Shown here: in pieces, positions 1,619 through 63,620 of the stretch
How the letters are laid out: each line of letters opens with the position of its first letter
Numbering within the stretch: the first letter of the stretch is position 1
Assembly (NCBI GenBank): GCA_977017575.1
Contig: CDRNVI010000069.1
Coordinates: forward strand, 248,001 to 312,000
Direction of reading: 5' to 3'
Source of the DNA: Paramoeba atlantica
Lineage: Eukaryota; Protista; Discosea
DNA length: 64,000 nt
Program-made: the position numbers and the translations under genes
Notes under the pieces: generated by a model
Seen by the model: only the letters and a program-made list of their open reading frames with translations
Databases searched by the model: none
Told to the model about the DNA's origin: nothing

Positions 1619-4204
1619 TCACTGAGTCTTACAGAAACAACAAATGATCCTAAAGAAAAAATACAGTATTCGGTGTAAAAAGGATACCCCGGGACCATTC
1701 TCATGTCCCGGATCCTCTACTTCATCCTCCGGCTCCCTGTGCGTCCTTCGCACGGGAGTGACAAACTTTTGGGGTGGGATCCTCACTTTCTCTTGTTCCT
1801 CTCTAAAGGAACTTCCAAGCAGCGTGGAGGCCGTAGCCTTCTCCCTTGGGTGTGCTCGATCCGTCCCGGGGGTATCCGGTACCGAAACGGGCATCCGCTC
1901 CGGGGAAGCGAGCAGCGAGGGTCTGGAACTCTCCGAGAATTCTCCCGCCATGTGCTCCATCGGGTTTAAATTTCCAGAGGAGGTAAGAGTGCCTGAGGCA
2001 CTCCCCGAGAGCGGGCGGCGAGCGCTGGGTGCGTGCGGGGTGGTGGGGATCAACGAGTCCATGGGAAGGAAGAAAGGGCTATCGGCGGGGGACTCGCGCG
2101 GAAGTGAAGAGCCCAGTCGCCACCGTTGTGGGGTACTCGGCGCTAGACGTTCCGGGTGGCCTGGGACCACACTTTGTGAGGAGGAGAAGAACGTCGCATC
2201 GGTGATCTGATTCTCGCGCAGGTCGAGCATTTGTATCGAACCATGGGTGATACGCTGACGCTGCTGGAAGAGCTTGCCGTCCCCCGTTAACAAGTTATCG
2301 CTGAGATCCAGGTAGTCGAGTTTCGCGGGAAGTGGTGCCATGGCCTCGACACGACCCACAAGTTCGTTGCCTCTGAGGTCAGCGTGTTGTAGACGTGAAG
2401 GCAGCACGAGCGTCTCCTGAGAACCTCTGGAAGATGCAGCCGCACCCCTACCATAATCTCTTGTTCTCTTTTCCTGGCCAGAGACTCGTAATGAGGTTTC
2501 GGGTGAACGAAGGACACTATGCGATTTGACGCTTCGTTCCGAGACTCGACTTAGTTCTCCTTCGATGGACCCACTCATAAGATTGTCGCTAAGATCCAGA
2601 TAGACCAGTGTTTGCGGAAAAGTTACTTGAGATAAGACTCCACTTAACGCATTTTCACCCAAGTCTAACTCCACCAGCCGTTGAGGAAGAGGTAAGCAGC
2701 TCAGATCACCCTCAATCTCATTCTCATGTGCCACAATTGACTGCAGGCTTTGGGGTAACAGATGCATCCGCTCTACACTACCCAGTATAGCGTTGTCACT
2801 AAGATTCACATGTTGCAGATTCGGGGGAAAGCGTAATTTCTCCACATTTCCTTGAATACGGTTATGTGCTACAACGAGTGTCGTCAAAGCACGAGGAAGC
2901 ACGAGATCGTGTAGACTGCCACTCAATCGGTTATCACGTACATCCAGTCGAGTGAGTCCCAGGGGCAGGCGCGTACGCTCGATATTTCCTGCCATCTGAT
3001 TATAACTTAAGTCCAGCTCCTCTAGGGTGTCTGGTAAAGTGAGCGAAGGGAAGACACCATGAAATTGGTTTTCACTGAGTGCCAAAGTGGAAAGTCTTGG
3101 CGGAAGCTGCACAGCTGAAAAATTGTTGCAGGAAATTGTATTCTGACTGAGATCAAGAAAGGTCAAGTGGGAAGGGAATTTTGCTTCCTCGAGTTGTCCG
3201 CTCACTTGATTATTGCTTAAATCAACTTCAGCCAGTGAGGACGGAAAGATCAAATCATGGATACGACCCCACAAAGCATTGCCTCTGAGGTCTAAAAAGC
3301 GCAACGCTGGTGTCCTGGTGATGTAAAGGAACTGTAGATCACCCTCCATACCCGTGTCACTCAGATCAAGATACGTTAAACCAGGTGGAAGACGCAAGTC
3401 TTTGACTTCGCCATGTAGTGAGTTTGCGCCCAAGTCCAGCTCTAGAAGTTCACGAGGCAGACTAAGGCTACGGACGTCAACCGAAATCATGTTATCGCTA
3501 AGGTCAAGGAGCTTCAATGACTCTGGTAGAACGATCTTCGCTAAGTCACCATACAGCTCGTTCTGGTTTAGATTTAGTACCCGAAGATGAGGGGGCAAAT
3601 TTTTGCCCGAAATGGAGGATGCCAGCGTCCCACGTAATTCGCGAGCGGACCACACAATACTAGTCACACGGCGGGAAGGGCTGCGGGATTCTCCAGAAAA
3701 GAGAGACATTAGCTTTTGTGCCCCCGAAGTGTCGGCGACTACGCTACACTCTACGCCGCTCCAATCACATGGAGGGGTTTCCGCGATCCAGCTCGGGTGT
3801 GGATTCTCTATTCCACAAATAAGACTCTGAAGTGCCTCCAAGTCCTCGCGTTCATCCGGATTCAGCGATCGAACGGGAGGTTTCGATAATTTCGTGGATA
3901 AGGCTTCTGGTATTTTACCACGTCGTCGGTGATGCGATCTCGGACTCGGGGCGTGAGAAGAAGCTCGACTCACAGCTCCCGTAGATTTCACTACAGGGTT
4001 ATCCAATCTCAGTCGCGGATTCCTTAATTGATCTTTTTGCAAATTCCGCGAACGAGTCTGTTGGGAGATGTCAGTTCCACGCATGTGTGTGGGTGCCCCG
4101 CCTAAGAAAAGACACAAGTATGGGATGATGACATGAAGAATCCTGTAGGGTACGGAATAATCGCGATAGCAGCGGGTGAATTGATTACGACAAAGGCTGC
4201 TCAT
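1619..4204 (-). CDS. Large leucine-rich repeat protein with LRRNT-like cap, Ser/Pro-rich tail and hydrophobic/Cys C-terminus
   Basis: About 20 LxxLxLxxNxLxG repeats; W..ETPPCDWSGVEC cap; ttttttacacAG acceptor upstream of the ATG. Confidence 0.9.
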   Translation of the reverse strand: MSSLCRNQFTRCYRDYSVPYRILHVIIPYLCLFLGGAPTHMRGTDISQQTRSRNLQKDQLRNPRLRLDNPVVKSTGAVSRASSHAPSPRSHHRRRGKIPEALSTKLSKPPVRSLNPDEREDLEALQSLICGIENPHPSWIAETPPCDWSGVECSVVADTSGAQKLMSLFSGESRSPSRRVTSIVWSARELRGTLASSISGKNLPPHLRVLNLNQNELYGDLAKIVLPESLKLLDLSDNMISVDVRSLSLPRELLELDLGANSLHGEVKDLRLPPGLTYLDLSDTGMEGDLQFLYITRTPALRFLDLRGNALWGRIHDLIFPSSLAEVDLSNNQVSGQLEEAKFPSHLTFLDLSQNTISCNNFSAVQLPPRLSTLALSENQFHGVFPSLTLPDTLEELDLSYNQMAGNIERTRLPLGLTRLDVRDNRLSGSLHDLVLPRALTTLVVAHNRIQGNVEKLRFPPNLQHVNLSDNAILGSVERMHLLPQSLQSIVAHENEIEGDLSCLPLPQRLVELDLGENALSGVLSQVTFPQTLVYLDLSDNLMSGSIEGELSRVSERSVKSHSVLRSPETSLRVSGQEKRTRDYGRGAAASSRGSQETLVLPSRLQHADLRGNELVGRVEAMAPLPAKLDYLDLSDNLLTGDGKLFQQRQRITHGSIQMLDLRENQITDATFFSSSQSVVPGHPERLAPSTPQRWRLGSSLPRESPADSPFFLPMDSLIPTTPHAPSARRPLSGSASGTLTSSGNLNPMEHMAGEFSESSRPSLLASPERMPVSVPDTPGTDRAHPREKATASTLLGSSFREEQEKVRIPPQKFVTPVRRTHREPEDEVEDPGHENGPGVSFLHRILYFFFRIICCFCKTQ

Positions 4205-52580: not shown

Positions 52581-53477
52581 ACCAGAACAAAAAGCAAAAA
52601 AGGTACGTTAAAGGTAGAATACTTTTGCCTGCGTTTTGAACGAATTTGCTTAAATAAATTATAGTATGGTGACTTTGCAGAACTTGACGTGTAGTAATAA
52701 CTCCATGCATTTCGGTCAATCCGATTGACATCCGTCATAGTACATACAGGGGTGCGGCTCTCTCAAGGGCTTCCCGTGGCGTACTGAGCGAGATCACATT
52801 CCTCCCCCGCCCATGTCTAAGAGAGTCACCGCATACTTTTTGTGGCGGAAGACGAGCGCACAGGATACTCCGCTGCATGTGGTCTGTGATGGAAACAGAC
52901 AAAATATTTGTTCGACTCCGAAATCGACAACAATTAGAAGCCGCTATTGAGGGGCTTTCCTTGAATTGAAACAGACCCACTCTGCAACGGTCCAGAAAAC
53001 GGTGAAGAGTTTCAGGAAACGTTATGAAATTGTTATTAGTCGGGACGGGGGGCACTGTGGTTACTAATTACATACCTTTTAGTTTGCTGGTGTGTTCGCT
53101 GGTTCGCTGTGTTCGCTGGTTCAGTGAACAAAATAGCGAACACAGCGAACCACTTAACTCGGCTCTTCAGAAGTTGAACTTCAAGATGGTCGAAAGCGTT
53201 ACAGAAACTGTATCTCTGGAAGGATTATTCCCTTGCATGCATTAGTTTTCATCACCCAAAAGAATTTTTTTTATTTTTTTTGGCCAGTTAAGTTCATCGA
53301 GTCTTGGCAAAGAAAGAAAGAAACAGCGAAAATTCATCTTAATAAAAAAATCATACAAGCTTTATCAACGATTGCATCGATTTGAGGATCCAAACGTTTA
53401 ATATTGCATTGTACGAAAATACATACTGCCATCTTTTCCGGAGACATGCTAGCCTGTCCACTGCAGTACTTACAGTA

Positions 53478-59790: not shown

Positions 59791-61458
59791 CATCTGTTCT
59801 ATACATGAGTCCAAATAATTTTGACTATTTTGTGGCTGCCTTTCGTAGATATACACGAGTGCAAACAGTACACAATACAGTAGAAACGTCGTAAACAATC
59901 CGATACGTACTCTATCCAGTATACAATTATCCAGTACGTGCAGTACAACAAAGAACTGCAACAAGAAATTAGGATGCAAATCTCACTTTCGCCATTTTTA
60001 TCATTCTTGGGAAGAACGGGCTGTTGAAAACATGAAAGGTTTGGTCCTGCAGTACCACAACAAGTCAGATACTACACGACGAAGTTAGTGAAATGGCCAT
60101 CAAACTGAACAAACGGCCACTAAGGTGTTTAAAATAAGTTTCACCAAAGAGCTTGGAAGACAAAATTTTACTATAAAGAGATGCAACATAAAAGCAACGA
60201 AGTTGTAAAGCAGTAAAGGCAAAACAATTGAGTTGTAAGATTGAGTCCCAAGTTTGAATGAACACAGGAAAGACTCGATTATTATTAGGTTTCCAGCACG
60301 AGCTGAATAGTGATATTTTTCCCAACTCATGGATTCTTGCGGTGCTCCTTTTTAATAATCATTTCTTTTTAGTGAAACTCTGAAACTATCTACAAGTATT
60401 TAAAATTTTTGGTAGGTACGAGGATCTCCAATTGCTCGTCACGATTTTCTGCACTGCCTTCTAAAACTATTCTGTCTTCTTATTGCCCAGCGAACAGAAG
60501 ATGTTCGATGCGCTTCAGTCATGCAGCAGGAATCTATGCTAAATGAATGTGGAATGCACGTAGTGAATAGCTTATATTCACTCTTGTTCTCCACTCTTGT
60601 TCCACATTTAGTCGGGTCGATAATTTTCTGACGCGAAAGAATCTTTCGAAGTCATGGTCGACGTGTGGACGAAGAATTTCTTCCTAAAAAACGAAGTGTT
60701 AACGCAGAAACCTAGGAGAGCTTCATGAAACTGATTCAGATTGTGATTATCCTCTAGATCTTTAGAGATATAGTAGAGGTACCGTACAACATAAAAAGTG
60801 TTCTGGTCCGTTCCTTATTGAGCCAACAGTGATCGCCTAGTGCTCCTCCCTATCATCCGAATTCTACCAAAAACACTCATAGAATGTTAAAATTAAAGGG
60901 CATCGTGTAAAAGGGTGTCCCTAGGGACAATACTGTAACCCGGACGGTCTGAATCACGACTAGATCTAATCATGAATAGACAGAGAAAGGAGATACAGAG
61001 GACAAAAAAAATAAGATGACAAAAAATGAAGATGATATAAAAAATACCTTCGTCCTGCACTTTCATCCAACACTTTTAACTCGTACATTCAATAAGCCAA
61101 TTTTTTCAGTTTGTGCGTAAGTGGCGCAAAGGTCCCACATTAAACATATCAAACGGAGAGTACGATTAACCACTCGCATTAGGCGATCATCTCAATCATG
61201 CATGTCGTCAACTGACTATAATTTTCGTATTTCGAGTATCCACAGAAAGTATATGTAAAGTCTGAGGCATAAGACTTTTCTTCAGCTCACCTCGGAGATT
61301 TTCATTATGATCCAACATCAGACTTCGCAAACCTGAAGGTAATGTGTCCAACTGTACCCAGCCTTCAAATTGATTTTTATGAAGCATCAGATTATAGAGA
61401 GTTGGTGGGAGACCACGTAGATCCGGAGTTCCCGCAAAGGCATTGCAGCCGATGGTTA

Positions 61459-62071
61459 TGATCATACGCTCGTGGCGCAGAGATACGTCTCTCTGTGTGA
61501 CGGCCGATACCATCGGCGCATGACCCGCATACGACGGGTGTCACACAGAGAGTGGAGTGCGAGGTAGGAGACGAGACGCCCATCGGTCATGCTACAGCAC
61601 GTATAGCCATGGTTCATGCTGCAACACGGTCAAGCCGTGGGTTCATGCTGTCAGATGGTCTATCGTGGATCATGATGCATCATGGGGAGGTCCGTTACCG
61701 CCGCACTCGCTACAGCATGTAGGGAGAGAGGCGTGCAAGTTCGCATCCCCTATACACGCATACAACGTGTCCTCCCGCTGTAGCACGCCCAGTGGTCCTC
61801 AAGGGAGGCCACCATGGCGCATAGCTCCCGGGAGAAGAAAGCACGAGAAGGAGAGAGCCGGGGAGGGAAGAAAGCTCACTCGAAGAGAGCGAGCCGGGGA
61901 GGGGTGAAGAGTGCGAAGTGCGTCCCCTACTTCCGCGACAAAGAGGGACAGTTTCAGCTAGCCGTCAGCCGGAAACGGGCATTTAAAAGTAAGAATACGC
62001 CCGTTTCCGGGAAAAGAAAGGAAGGGCTAGCAAAATGTACCAACAAGGTACAGAAACTGTATCTTTATGCG
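61459..62071 (-). mobile_element. SL-RNA-headed inserted unit B (~610 bp)
   Basis: Starts CGCATAAAGATACAGTTTCTGTACCTTGTTG|GTAC (SL-like exon 62041-62071, donor GT at 62040-62039); shares a structured 5' part and a structured 3' end with unit A. Confidence 0.85.
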
Positions 62072-62135
62072 AGCGTCACGAGCTCTGGAGGAAGATGACT
62101 TAAATCAGCGATTCCCGATAGTTTATTCGCCGTTA

Positions 62136-62714
62136 TTTTTTGTTTATCATGCGCTCTTTGGCGCAGAGATAATCCCCTTAATGCGACGGCCGATGTCATC
62201 GGCACATAATCCGCCCACAACGGATGTCGCCAAAGGGGATTCGACGCGGACTCTGTCGGTAGAGAGGTCCAGACAACTCGCCTCTCTTTACGCAGCCGGA
62301 GGGGCGTACTGCAACCGACTCGGTCCCAGTCGGTAGAGGTGGTCCAGGCAACTCACCATCTCTTTACGCAGCCGGAGGGGCGCACTGCAACCGACCGCTG
62401 CCTCGCGATAATGCAAGGCAGAGTCACGCCCGGTGGTCCTCAAGGGAGGCCACCATGGCGCATAGCTCCCGGGAAGAGACAGGCGCGAGAAGAAGAAAGC
62501 CGGGGAGGGAAGAAAACTCACTCAAGGAGTGAGCCGGGGAGGGGTGAAAAGTCGGAAGTACGTCCCCTACTTCCACGACAAAGAGGGACAGTTTCCGCTA
62601 GCCGTCAGCCGGAAACGGGCATTTAAAAGGAAAATGTATGCCCGTTTCCGGGAAAAGAAAGGAAGGGCTAGCAAAATGTACCAACAAGGTACAGAAACTG
62701 TATCTTTATCGTTA
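62136..62714 (-). mobile_element. SL-RNA-headed inserted unit A (~575 bp)
   Basis: Starts TAACGATAAAGATACAGTTTCTGTACCTTGTTG|GTAC (exon-like 62682-62714); ends GATAAAC-A6 followed by a second TAACG (62131-62135). Confidence 0.85.
62545..62714 (-). ncRNA. Spliced-leader RNA-like sequence (5'-truncated exon plus intron-like stems); equivalent in unit B at ~61900-62071
   Basis: GATACAGTTTCTGTAC is identical to the kinetoplastid SL core and is followed by TTG|GT. Then come a large stem (GCTAGCC..GGCTAGC enclosing a 14-bp hairpin), single-stranded GAAACU, a GTCCC..GGGAC stem and a T-run. Confidence 0.7.
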
Positions 62715-63620
62715 CAGGTGAAGCAAAGTTTTCGGTAAACAGGTGAAATCGATTGACCCAGTGAAAATATTATGAGCGAAGTTAGCGTCCATGGTTTGTG
62801 GCGGTAATTCATTGAGAGACAACTCCCCAGTAAGCTGATTATTGGAAACAAGAATTTGGAGCACTGAGCATGGGAGATATTTCAAAACAATAATGCCGTT
62901 TAGAGCACACTTTCCCCAACGCAACTGCGACACATTATCTCCCTTGTCACATATCACATGATTCCATTCACATGCTGGCGTGTTGGTATTCCAAGAGGGA
63001 TCGGTATTGCTGACGTCTTTAATAAAGTTTGCAAGTTCGTATTCTGGTGGGACGTTGGCACCACGAATCCGACCGGGACGTGACGACGGAACGTCCTCTG
63101 CCATACGTATAATATACATGTATGAAGGAAAACTGTGATACATAGCGCAATCGGAATAATACGTTTAGGGGAACAGAGAATCAAAGAAAAACGTAAATAG
63201 ACTCATGTATTTGGTGAAATAACGTGAATGAAATTTACCATCAAAAATATTTGCAAAACGAGCTCCTCAATTCGGAAAAGAATATAGGAATTTCCTGTAC
63301 TGAGTGATATAAAATTTTCAAAAAAGAAATGTGTCTTGCGGAGCGCAATGACTCCAATGATGGAGTTTTCAGATCCCTCAACCGATACCGTTCACATGCT
63401 ATCTTTCATTTACATGATGTTGCTTTGATAATCGAATGGAGATTGAGCATCTCCAATGTACCGCATTTATGTGAGACGTTTTTACAATGAATCCGACCAG
63501 CACGTGTTGTGTTCATTTAAGCAATGCCCTCAGCTGCCCAGAAAATGAAGTATCTTACTATAGGGAACATCTAATGCTAATTCGAATAATATTATAAATT
63601 ATTATGTGACAGGGCAATGG

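Follow-up and report, generated by a model that had tools for sequence, protein, structure and literature searches.

A dispersed family of short spliced-leader-headed retroposons interrupting a leucine-rich-repeat gene of Paramoeba atlantica, and its probable R2/CRE-type partners

We analyzed a 64,000-nucleotide stretch of the Paramoeba atlantica assembly GCA_977017575.1 (contig CDRNVI010000069.1, positions 248,001 to 312,000 of the forward strand; the window), in which a gene for a leucine-rich-repeat (LRR) protein is split by two short non-coding units, each headed by a piece of the spliced leader (SL) exon. The LRR gene lies on the minus strand with its start at 63143 and is interrupted two times by sense-oriented inserts. 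The large open reading frames (ORFs) of the window, including those for GDI, kinases and RPN11, are all on the minus strand; hence, both units stand in sense inside a transcription unit. The sequences flanking both units code for an LRRNT_2-like cap and 23-residue repeats. The N-terminal piece gives a weak LRRNT_2 match and resembles another LRR gene of the window, which is intact (1619-4204, 861 aa).

Two insertions in an LRR gene and their empty sites

The interrupted gene and its inserts are laid out as follows:

62713..63143, minus strand: 5' part of the LRR gene, with start codon, LRRNT_2-like cap and first repeats
62136..62712, minus strand: upstream retroposon copy (unit A of a preliminary description), subfamily B, 577 bp, limits from empty-site contigs
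62255..62395, minus strand: 76-bp tandem repeat, 1.9 copies, in the variable middle of the 577-bp unit
62068..62135, minus strand: LRR segment between the inserts, 68 bp, in-frame reading (L)TANKLSGIADLSHLPPELVTLA
61454..62067, minus strand: downstream retroposon copy, subfamily A, 614 bp, limits from an empty-site contig
61208..61453, minus strand: 3' part of the LRR gene, C-terminal repeats with stop codon

The preliminary description, made from the letters of the window, had reported two sense units of about 575 and 610 bp splitting an LRR gene, and these are recovered here as 577 and 614 bp. The 64 bp that it gave for the gap between them has to be corrected, as the empty-site contigs give 68 bp (62135..62068). 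The first ~290 nt of the two units are 92% identical and the last ~100 nt 76%, and their middles do not align to each other, much as it had described (a shared 5' part of ~300 nt, a shared 3' end of ~100 nt and unrelated middles). Its ~70-bp tandem repeat in unit A is the 76-bp repeat listed above, and its A6 terminus stands too, with the 577-bp unit closing in AAAC followed by A6. The 614-bp unit has a weak 27-bp repeat. Judged by ORF length, the frames over the units reach at most 116 aa, in differing frames and on both strands, and a TAA in frame immediately follows the 5' junction of each unit.

The gene is seen without its inserts in contigs that come from further sequencing runs of this organism and were aligned to the locus. 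A contig from run X2 joins 61453 directly to 62068, leaving out exactly the 614-bp unit, and in contigs from both X1 and X2 the 577-bp unit is missing, with only two letters separating 62135 from 62713. On the gene strand, the empty site of the 614-bp unit reads ...ACG CTC GCA ATC GGC TGC AAT... (LVTLA|IGCNAFAG) and that of the 577-bp unit ...CAC CTG TAC CTA ACG GCG AAT... (LHLY LTANKLSG), both being perfect in-frame LRR repeats. The 614-bp insertion was clean, the 577-bp insertion replaced CC (a 2-bp loss), and target duplication amounts to 0 bp in both. CTAAC is present in the empty site of the 577-bp unit (...TACCTAACG...) and absent from that of the 614-bp unit (...GCAATCGG...). The flanks of the empty-site contigs match at ~99.5%, with 2-3 differences in about 550-590 bp, and run X1 also has a contig that crosses from the 614-bp unit into its 3' flank (record 1, 60900-61480). 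Because contigs from the other runs skip the units and restore the LRR frame, both insertions are polymorphic and gene-disrupting, and they are real and recent.

At 62788-62886, in the 5' part of the LRR gene, run X1 further contains two contigs, both at a depth of about 50; one is identical to the window and the other has 7 differences in 99 bp. The junction also occurs in a third form, with GACAT between 62135 and 62716. These variants represent either divergent haplotypes or a closely related paralogue.

A dispersed family, its structured tail and its candidate partners

Searching the assembly (45.7 Mb, 248 contigs) with the 614-bp unit returned 416 candidate matches, of which at least 40 scored copies are 95-100% identical to it. 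The best 30 of the 416 are 95-100% identical over ~600 bp and lie on different contigs with different flanks; the median terminal branch length of the family copies is 0.0018. Among 30 fetched matches to an SL-core pattern, 21 were family members, 6 SL genes and 3 other elements, a share that implies several hundred copies with an intact SL core. At least five combinations of head and tail were seen (types A, B, C, E and F) along with a relic D type. Candidates that at first lacked a recognized tail proved to be E- or F-type copies missed by the first pattern, or copies interrupted by other elements. The 3' ends are constant within each subfamily and the 5' ends ragged. These observations support the assignment of both units to a family of mobile, non-autonomous retroposons in which several subfamilies have diverged. 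The earlier suggestion of a non-autonomous retroposon family with at least two divergent subfamilies is thereby borne out by the five or more types, the unique flanks, the fixed 3' ends and the empty-site alleles, and the collection of copies and flanks that it had called for yields hundreds of dispersed copies, each in unique surroundings. The poly(A) tails and target-site duplications that it had proposed to look for fared differently: B-type tails do carry a short A-run of variable length, at most A3-A6, but inspection of the flanks disclosed no consistent duplications, with a single 8-bp case in L030. Metagenome scans with the family head and with the tail gave no match. In one C-type copy, present in L038 and L046 with identical flanks, the terminal 14-mer (CATGAACATCAAAAC) is tandemly duplicated at the 3' end, as if reverse transcription had been primed a second time at its start.

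The 3' end of the units is a structured tail:

62141..62241, minus strand: tail of the 577-bp unit, three-way junction and terminal hairpin, 104.9 bits with covariance model R1
61456..61555, minus strand: tail of the 614-bp unit, 113.9 bits with R1

When 19 tails, drawn from five types, are aligned, their common fold is a three-way junction followed by a terminal hairpin. Seven pairs, in helices P1 and P2 and the terminal hairpin, are kept through two-sided changes, and the G.U pairs fit the SL-sense strand only. The covariance model R1 built from this alignment matched more than 150 copies. At its terminus the tail runs from TCTCT through a stem of 4-5 bp, with its loop and complementary strand, to ATGA, after which come a few A-rich bases. 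The same terminal hairpin occurs in four long interspersed nuclear elements (LINEs; L068, L020, L051 and L056), 60-150 nt downstream of an ORF for a CCHC knuckle and a nuclease domain, and the hairpin stems of the LINEs differ yet pair (GTAG/CTAC, GCCTT/AAGGT, AGTGA/TCACT, ACAG/CTGT). The nuclease is of the PD..E.T..K type (...LRPDGW..IIELTCPWEEN..FEVGARG...). The L068 ORF matches RVT_1 (1.6e-34) and zf-RVT; the best solved relatives of its reverse transcriptase (RT) are R2 proteins (8gh6, 1.7e-30), and its C-terminal region aligns with the R2 endonuclease domain (9nl3). Because the terminal hairpin is common to the units and these LINEs, elements with an RT, a CCHC knuckle and a restriction-like endonuclease (RLE) of the R2/CRE type are likely the mobilizers of the units. 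By analogy with known systems, we infer that reverse transcription would start from recognition of the tail hairpin. In its minimum-energy fold, the L068 3' untranslated region does not form the terminal hairpin.

The L020 LINE sits in sense before ...KLSRNQFSG, at the same LRR position as the units; the L068 LINE end is directly followed by a family head, and other LINE flanks are a short interspersed nuclear element (SINE), a (TG)n run and unidentified sequence. The strict motif [LIVMF]xxNx[LFIVM]xG lies within 8 residues after the tail in 14 of 45 distinct insertions, all in sense, against 1 of 300 at random, and this preference is strongest in A-type copies. LRR targeting is a bias, not strict site specificity. 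The RLE-type LINEs in L056 (plus strand, 300-1360) and L050 (minus strand) are oppositely oriented to the family heads that they adjoin or lie inside; in L056 the family head ends in the loop of its long hairpin, ~120 bp past the 3' end of the opposite LINE.

The spliced leader and the head of the units

The true SL genes form tandem arrays with a 1,454-bp repeat that reads ...CCCTTGTT|AACTTTAACGATAAAGATACAGTTTCTGTACCTTGTTG|GTATGAGAAG... and includes the core seen in the units, so the organism's real SL does carry the core on which the preliminary description relied. We number the SL exon, of 38 nt, from AAC, a start that is set by analogy and makes the numbering one base shorter than that of the trypanosome SL upstream of the core. 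About 35 SL genes are assembled with their promoter-proximal sequence; all continue through ATAAAG and none is interrupted. In a possible RNA run, the SL exon is joined at ...TTG to other mRNAs, as trans-splicing predicts. The core followed by GGT occurs at 812 sites in the assembly and another 528 exact exon 3' ends are dispersed and followed by A, C or T, making more than 1,300 dispersed SL exons against about 35 SL genes. Within the window the core occurs 3 times against 0.02 expected. Many retroelement families, including unrelated LINE families, are SL-headed, and some carry the SL from nt 3. Since SL-headed retroelements are so common, an SL exon at the 5' end is best explained as a general mark of retroelements here, coming from trans-spliced RNA templates.

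Several SL remnants lie outside the family proper. At window 53199-53214 (minus strand), the SL-like stretch AGATACAGTTTCTGTAA, which stands after ...CCTTCCAG, agrees with SL nt 15-30 at all positions but one and loses the resemblance beyond them; it is perhaps a short remnant of an SL. In L003:540-620 (plus strand), an element of another family has a poly(A) run, then SL nt 7-38 and then a partial SL of nt 23-38; by analogy, this tandem relict suggests the type expected when a relict SL is re-spliced at an internal AG. In the SL arrays of L047-L049 (G000:C11:1-7926), every repeat has a 5'-truncated D-type relic in its spacer, which implies that the insertion was homogenized through the array. 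The C97 and C107 SL arrays, with periods of about 2,557-2,558 bp, also have a D-type relic per repeat. The spacer relic is reverse-oriented and lies beside a long (CT)n run and a 22-24-bp minisatellite. A genome-wide first look counted 1,851 candidate RT domains in the 45.7 Mb, many in frames of more than 1,000 aa; apparently intact retroelements are unusually abundant in this genome.

The heads of the two units contain the following elements, given for the 577-bp unit first where both are listed:

62682..62712, minus strand: SL exon nt 8-38 without any difference from the exon of the SL gene, head of the 577-bp unit
62041..62067, minus strand: SL exon nt 12-38, head of the 614-bp unit
62668..62681 and 62027-62040, minus strand: 14-nt segment, GTAC-pyrimidines-TAG, directly after the SL exon, opening with a 5' splice-site dinucleotide and closing with AG
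62609..62651 and 61969-62010, minus strand: long head hairpin, stem of 14-16 bp
62569..62595 and 61929-61955, minus strand: anti-SL, complementary to SL nt 2-26

The preliminary description had seen in these heads the layout of an SL RNA. A 5'-truncated SL exon and a GT are present, starting at nt 8 and nt 12; the GTAC that follows is, however, not the SL intron. A C-type head shares with the SL repeat exon nt 11-38 and GT only (other copies reach nt 8), and the sequence after its exon (GTACATTTTGCTAGCCC...) is unrelated to the SL intron. The promoter-proximal sequence of the SL gene, exon nt 1-7 and intron homology beyond GTA are all missing from the units. The mark by which relict-SL retrocopies are known is present, with the exon ending in ...TTG and GTAC following without further intron homology. 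An Rfam search at gathering thresholds over the whole window, and one at E<=10 over 61300-62900, found no SL RNA and no ribozyme (HDV, twister or hammerhead), their matches being only chance-level microRNA and small RNA families; ARAGORN found no tRNA-like gene.

Across 42 unique copies the first SL nucleotide ranges from nt 6 to nt 27 with a mode at 10-11: nt 6 and nt 8 in one copy each, nt 10 in 8, nt 11 in 13, nt 12 in 3, nt 13 in 5, nt 14 in 3, nt 15 in 2 and later positions in 6. The nt-6 case is the 577-bp unit, whose first two bases are target-derived, placing its true start at nt 8; the ACG (nt 8-10) of its head is insert-derived according to the empty site. Microhomology at the 5' junctions is 0-3 nt. 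Although the heads of the subfamilies otherwise differ by 8-22%, their SL portion from nt 12 to 38 does not vary. In L011 (minus strand), three stuttered copies of the SL 5' part (CATAAAGATACAGTTTCT, CATAAGATACAGTACT and the full head) lie ~45 bp upstream of a family head, which suggests template slippage at the 5' junction.

In every subfamily the SL exon is directly followed by GTAC, a short pyrimidine run and TAG. This 14-nt GT...AG segment is exactly missing in 5 of 28 A-type copies, in which the SL exon runs straight into CCCTTCC, and a sixth copy lacks 12 nt. The six are scattered on a tree of the element body, and forcing them into monophyly costs 51.5 log-likelihood units (approximately unbiased test, p = 4.8e-7). 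As the loss is both precise and polyphyletic, it is most simply explained by trans-splicing of the SL onto that AG, followed by retroposition.

Further into the head, the anti-SL, GAAACTGT-CCC-TCTTTGTCG-YG-GAAGT, pairs with SL nt 19-26, 9-17 and 2-6. In four subfamilies the SL/anti-SL duplex has a predicted energy of -19.5 to -25.8 kcal/mol, against -11 +/- 1.9 for shuffled sequences, 0 of 1000 of which came as low. The longest ungapped complementarity to the SL, with G.U allowed, is not significant, being equaled in 244 of 2000 and 1279 of 2000 shuffles. The anti-SL helix appears in both the minimum-energy and the consensus folds, and the domain that it closes contains an SL hairpin GUACC/GGUAC that uses the GTAC, a helix over the TAG and the long hairpin. 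Paired cells make up 97.7% of this domain, compared with 34-42% when the partners are slid, and single-sequence folds of the head have z-scores of -6 to -9.5. Two pairs of the long hairpin have compensatory changes. The hairpin substitution noted in the preliminary description, A-T to G-T, is real: an A in the 577-bp unit corresponds to a G in the 614-bp unit opposite T, and pairs as G.U only in a minus-strand RNA, which supports an RNA of that strand. The pairing of the anti-SL with nt 2-6, which are in no DNA copy of the family, suggests in this model that the partner in the RNA is the full SL; the chance probability of the extension is estimated at ~0.02 and, taken alone, it is only suggestive.

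Origin of the units and their affinities

Taken together, we think it probable that the units are recent insertions of a 0.56-0.62-kb non-coding, SINE- or SIDE-like retroposon family mobilized by R2/CRE-type LINEs (SIDE, short internally deleted element). Such a gene-less family would be copied in trans by the R2/CRE-type non-LTR retrotransposons of the same genome. The LINE protein would bind the UCUCU-stem-loop-stem-AUGA hairpin to start target-primed reverse transcription. Insertion would favor LRR-coding DNA, in sense, between residues 5 and 6 of the repeat, before L-x-x-N-x-L/F-x-G, and would produce no target duplication, as the empty sites show for these two copies. The new copy would then be transcribed along with its host gene in the polycistronic unit and need no promoter of its own. 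Its SL exon would most likely be acquired, and perhaps reacquired, through a trans-spliced template RNA in which the SL zips to the internal anti-SL to form the conserved 5' domain, and DNA copies would start raggedly at SL nt 8-15.

Several observations weigh against this reconstruction. Very close paralogues, and not alleles, could in principle be the source of the empty-site contigs. The partner LINEs are known from partial sequence, and their link to the units is the terminal hairpin motif alone: in a blastn comparison of the units with the 3.7 kb of L068 only the adjoining SINE head is similar, and the covariance model R1 does not score the LINE tails. About half of the A-type copies, and most of those of types B, C and E, lie outside the LRR motif. 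RNA data are limited to the one possible RNA run, with 3 contigs. The three bases after the exon (GTA) match the SL intron, which is weak evidence for an origin from an SL gene. Finally, GTAC is preceded by TTG, not AG, so canonical trans-splicing could not regenerate the form with SL and GTAC; in the main form the SL piece is either now inherited or involves an additional step.

We also put forward, tentatively and as a rather doubtful extension, that the 5' end of the retroposon is set by the trans-splicing system and not by a promoter or ribozyme, with the anti-SL capturing the SL of the host. The capture might act in trans and bring SL RNA to the pyrimidine-AG site, which lies 75 nt upstream, or it might act in cis once trans-splicing has taken place. 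The resulting 5' helix would free the element RNA from the host polycistron and fix the start of the DNA copy, and a CRE-type endonuclease still reading the SL around nt 11/12 might add to the choice of the 5' end.

The SL piece invites a different account, in which the head is a relic or working copy of a CRE-type target, either a captured SL half-site or a 5' boundary set by the endonuclease at nt 11/12. Downstream of a CRE-type element in an SL gene, the half-site consists of SL nt 12 onward and GT. The partner enzymes combine RT and RLE like those of the CRE clade, which inserts at nt 11/12 (PMC5814959, PMC12278014); 5' ends fall at SL nt 10-13 in 29 of 42 copies; SL nt 12-38 stays invariant while the heads otherwise differ by 8-22%; and GTA follows the exon as in the SL gene. 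Moreover, the 3' end of the L068 LINE abuts ATAAAG... and that of the L018 SINE abuts AAAG..., which is the geometry of CRE in an SL gene. Yet 0 of about 35 SL genes are interrupted there, homology to the SL intron or spacer stops at GTA, and two copies start at nt 8, with the empty site proving nt 8-10 to be insert-derived. The anti-SL pairs also with nt 2-6, which are never within the half-site, unrelated LINE families here are SL-headed as well, and since our SL numbering is one base shorter, 11/12 fits only within 1-2 bases. We regard this account as unlikely, though it retains more than a trace of plausibility.

The remaining alternatives fare worse. The preliminary description had taken the units for SINEs with an SL RNA head or for mobile monomers of the SL gene (orphons), a head of the former kind supplying transcription as tRNA, 7SL and 5S heads do. 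Although the SL core, a GT donor and a donor-containing hairpin are indeed found in the head, the homology is 31 nt only, covering exon nt ~8-38 and GT(A), without promoter or intron; the 1,454-bp array monomer is not matched, which speaks against orphons. The units lack exon nt 1-7 together with the promoter-proximal sequence and the entire intron, and 0 of 42 copies reach beyond nt 6. In kinetoplastid SL RNA genes the promoter lies upstream, so that a copied exon could not drive transcription, and the absence of any Rfam or ARAGORN small-RNA gene and the 528 other SL ends on unrelated sequences count against an SL RNA acting as a SINE-type head. Both forms of the proposal are accordingly very improbable. 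Slightly less credible still is the notion that the units are intron-like (introners), spliced from the LRR mRNA so that the gene stays functional. Sense orientation, a fixed codon position and GT and AG signals would suit it, but the empty-site boundaries are not GT..AG, an in-frame TAA stands at both 5' junctions, use of the SL donor would leave 27-31 nt with a stop, and no skipped joint appears in the possible RNA run, where coverage is almost nil. That the locus is an assembly chimera of the SL array and the LRR gene is barely conceivable: no support for it was found, and against it stand the hundreds of copies with unique flanks, the independent contig of run X1 that spans the 3' junction of the 614-bp unit and the absence of SL-array sequence from the units.

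With the R2/CRE-mobilized family as our preferred reading, its nearest known counterparts, on present sequence comparison, appear to be the R2 SIDEs and other short LINE-dependent elements and, for the SL tag, the relict leaders of dinoflagellate retrogenes. We would describe the units as RLE-LINE hitchhikers whose head combines SL and anti-SL and whose target, a coding repeat, is unusual. R2 SIDEs are short, internally deleted non-autonomous elements that parasitize R2 in insects. They are non-coding, depend on an RLE-type LINE, use a LINE 3' RNA signal along with the target and orientation of the LINE, and are co-transcribed with their host. The units are likewise non-coding and carry the terminal hairpin of the LINEs, and they may share the other traits, the target and orientation being matched by one LINE (L020). 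The units differ in their LRR-motif target (in place of 28S rDNA), in the SL exon and anti-SL of their head, in that Rfam found no 5' ribozyme in them, and in a body that is no obvious deletion derivative of the LINE sequence read. The eel UnaL2/UnaSINE1-type pairs are known for stringent recognition of a 3' stem-loop; as here, a terminal hairpin is common to LINE and SINE while the remainder differs, but the LINE of the units is of the RLE type instead of the apurinic/apyrimidinic endonuclease (APE) type and there is no terminal simple repeat. Of the classical SINE hallmarks, the units have the 3' end shared with a LINE and lack a head derived from a small-RNA gene with an internal promoter.

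Kinetoplastid and dinoflagellate elements offer further comparisons. Members of the CRE clade of trypanosomatids (SLACS, CZAR, CRE1 and CRE2) insert in the SL exon between nt 11 and 12 (PMC5814959, PMC12278014). They share with the system described here the kinetoplastid host group, the combination of RT and restriction-like endonuclease seen in the partner LINEs and a link to SL nt 11/12. Whereas CRE elements have SL-gene insertions, poly(A) tails and target duplications, the units have a hairpin end, lack a duplication and reside in LRR genes or elsewhere, with the SL piece inside the element at its 5' end and the SL genes intact. In these papers on the trypanosomatid mobilome, the non-autonomous elements are INGI-derived only, the CRE-clade elements are all in SL genes, and non-autonomous CRE derivatives are not mentioned (PMC5814959, PMC12278014). 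The short non-coding kinetoplastid retroposons RIME, NARTc and SIDER have ingi/L1Tc partners (PMC12278014, PMC2323293) and resemble the units in being short, non-coding and LINE-mobilized, but are distinguished by the Pr77 5' hallmark, an APE-type LINE and poly(A), where the units combine a hairpin tail with an SL/anti-SL head and have an RLE LINE as their partner. In dinoflagellate retrogenes, a relict SL at the 5' end marks copying from trans-spliced RNA (PMC5585692, PMC6050394). A DNA copy of the SL exon and tandem relicts (L003) are found here likewise; in contrast to the dinoflagellate cases, the units are mobile elements and not cellular genes, their SL is truncated at nt 8-15 and not at an internal AG, and an anti-SL has evolved.

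The family would thus represent an active R2/CRE-type LINE/SINE system outside the usual safe havens of rDNA, SL genes and microsatellites. By inserting at one codon boundary of a protein-coding repeat, it knocks out members of a large LRR family, and its insertions differ between samples of one species, making it a live source of variation. Kinetoplastid-type mobile elements would also join the few cases in which a DNA copy of the SL proves a trans-spliced RNA template. The SL/anti-SL helix and the repeated loss of the GT..AG segment offer a testable handle on how a promoter-less element embedded in a polycistron may get a defined 5' end.

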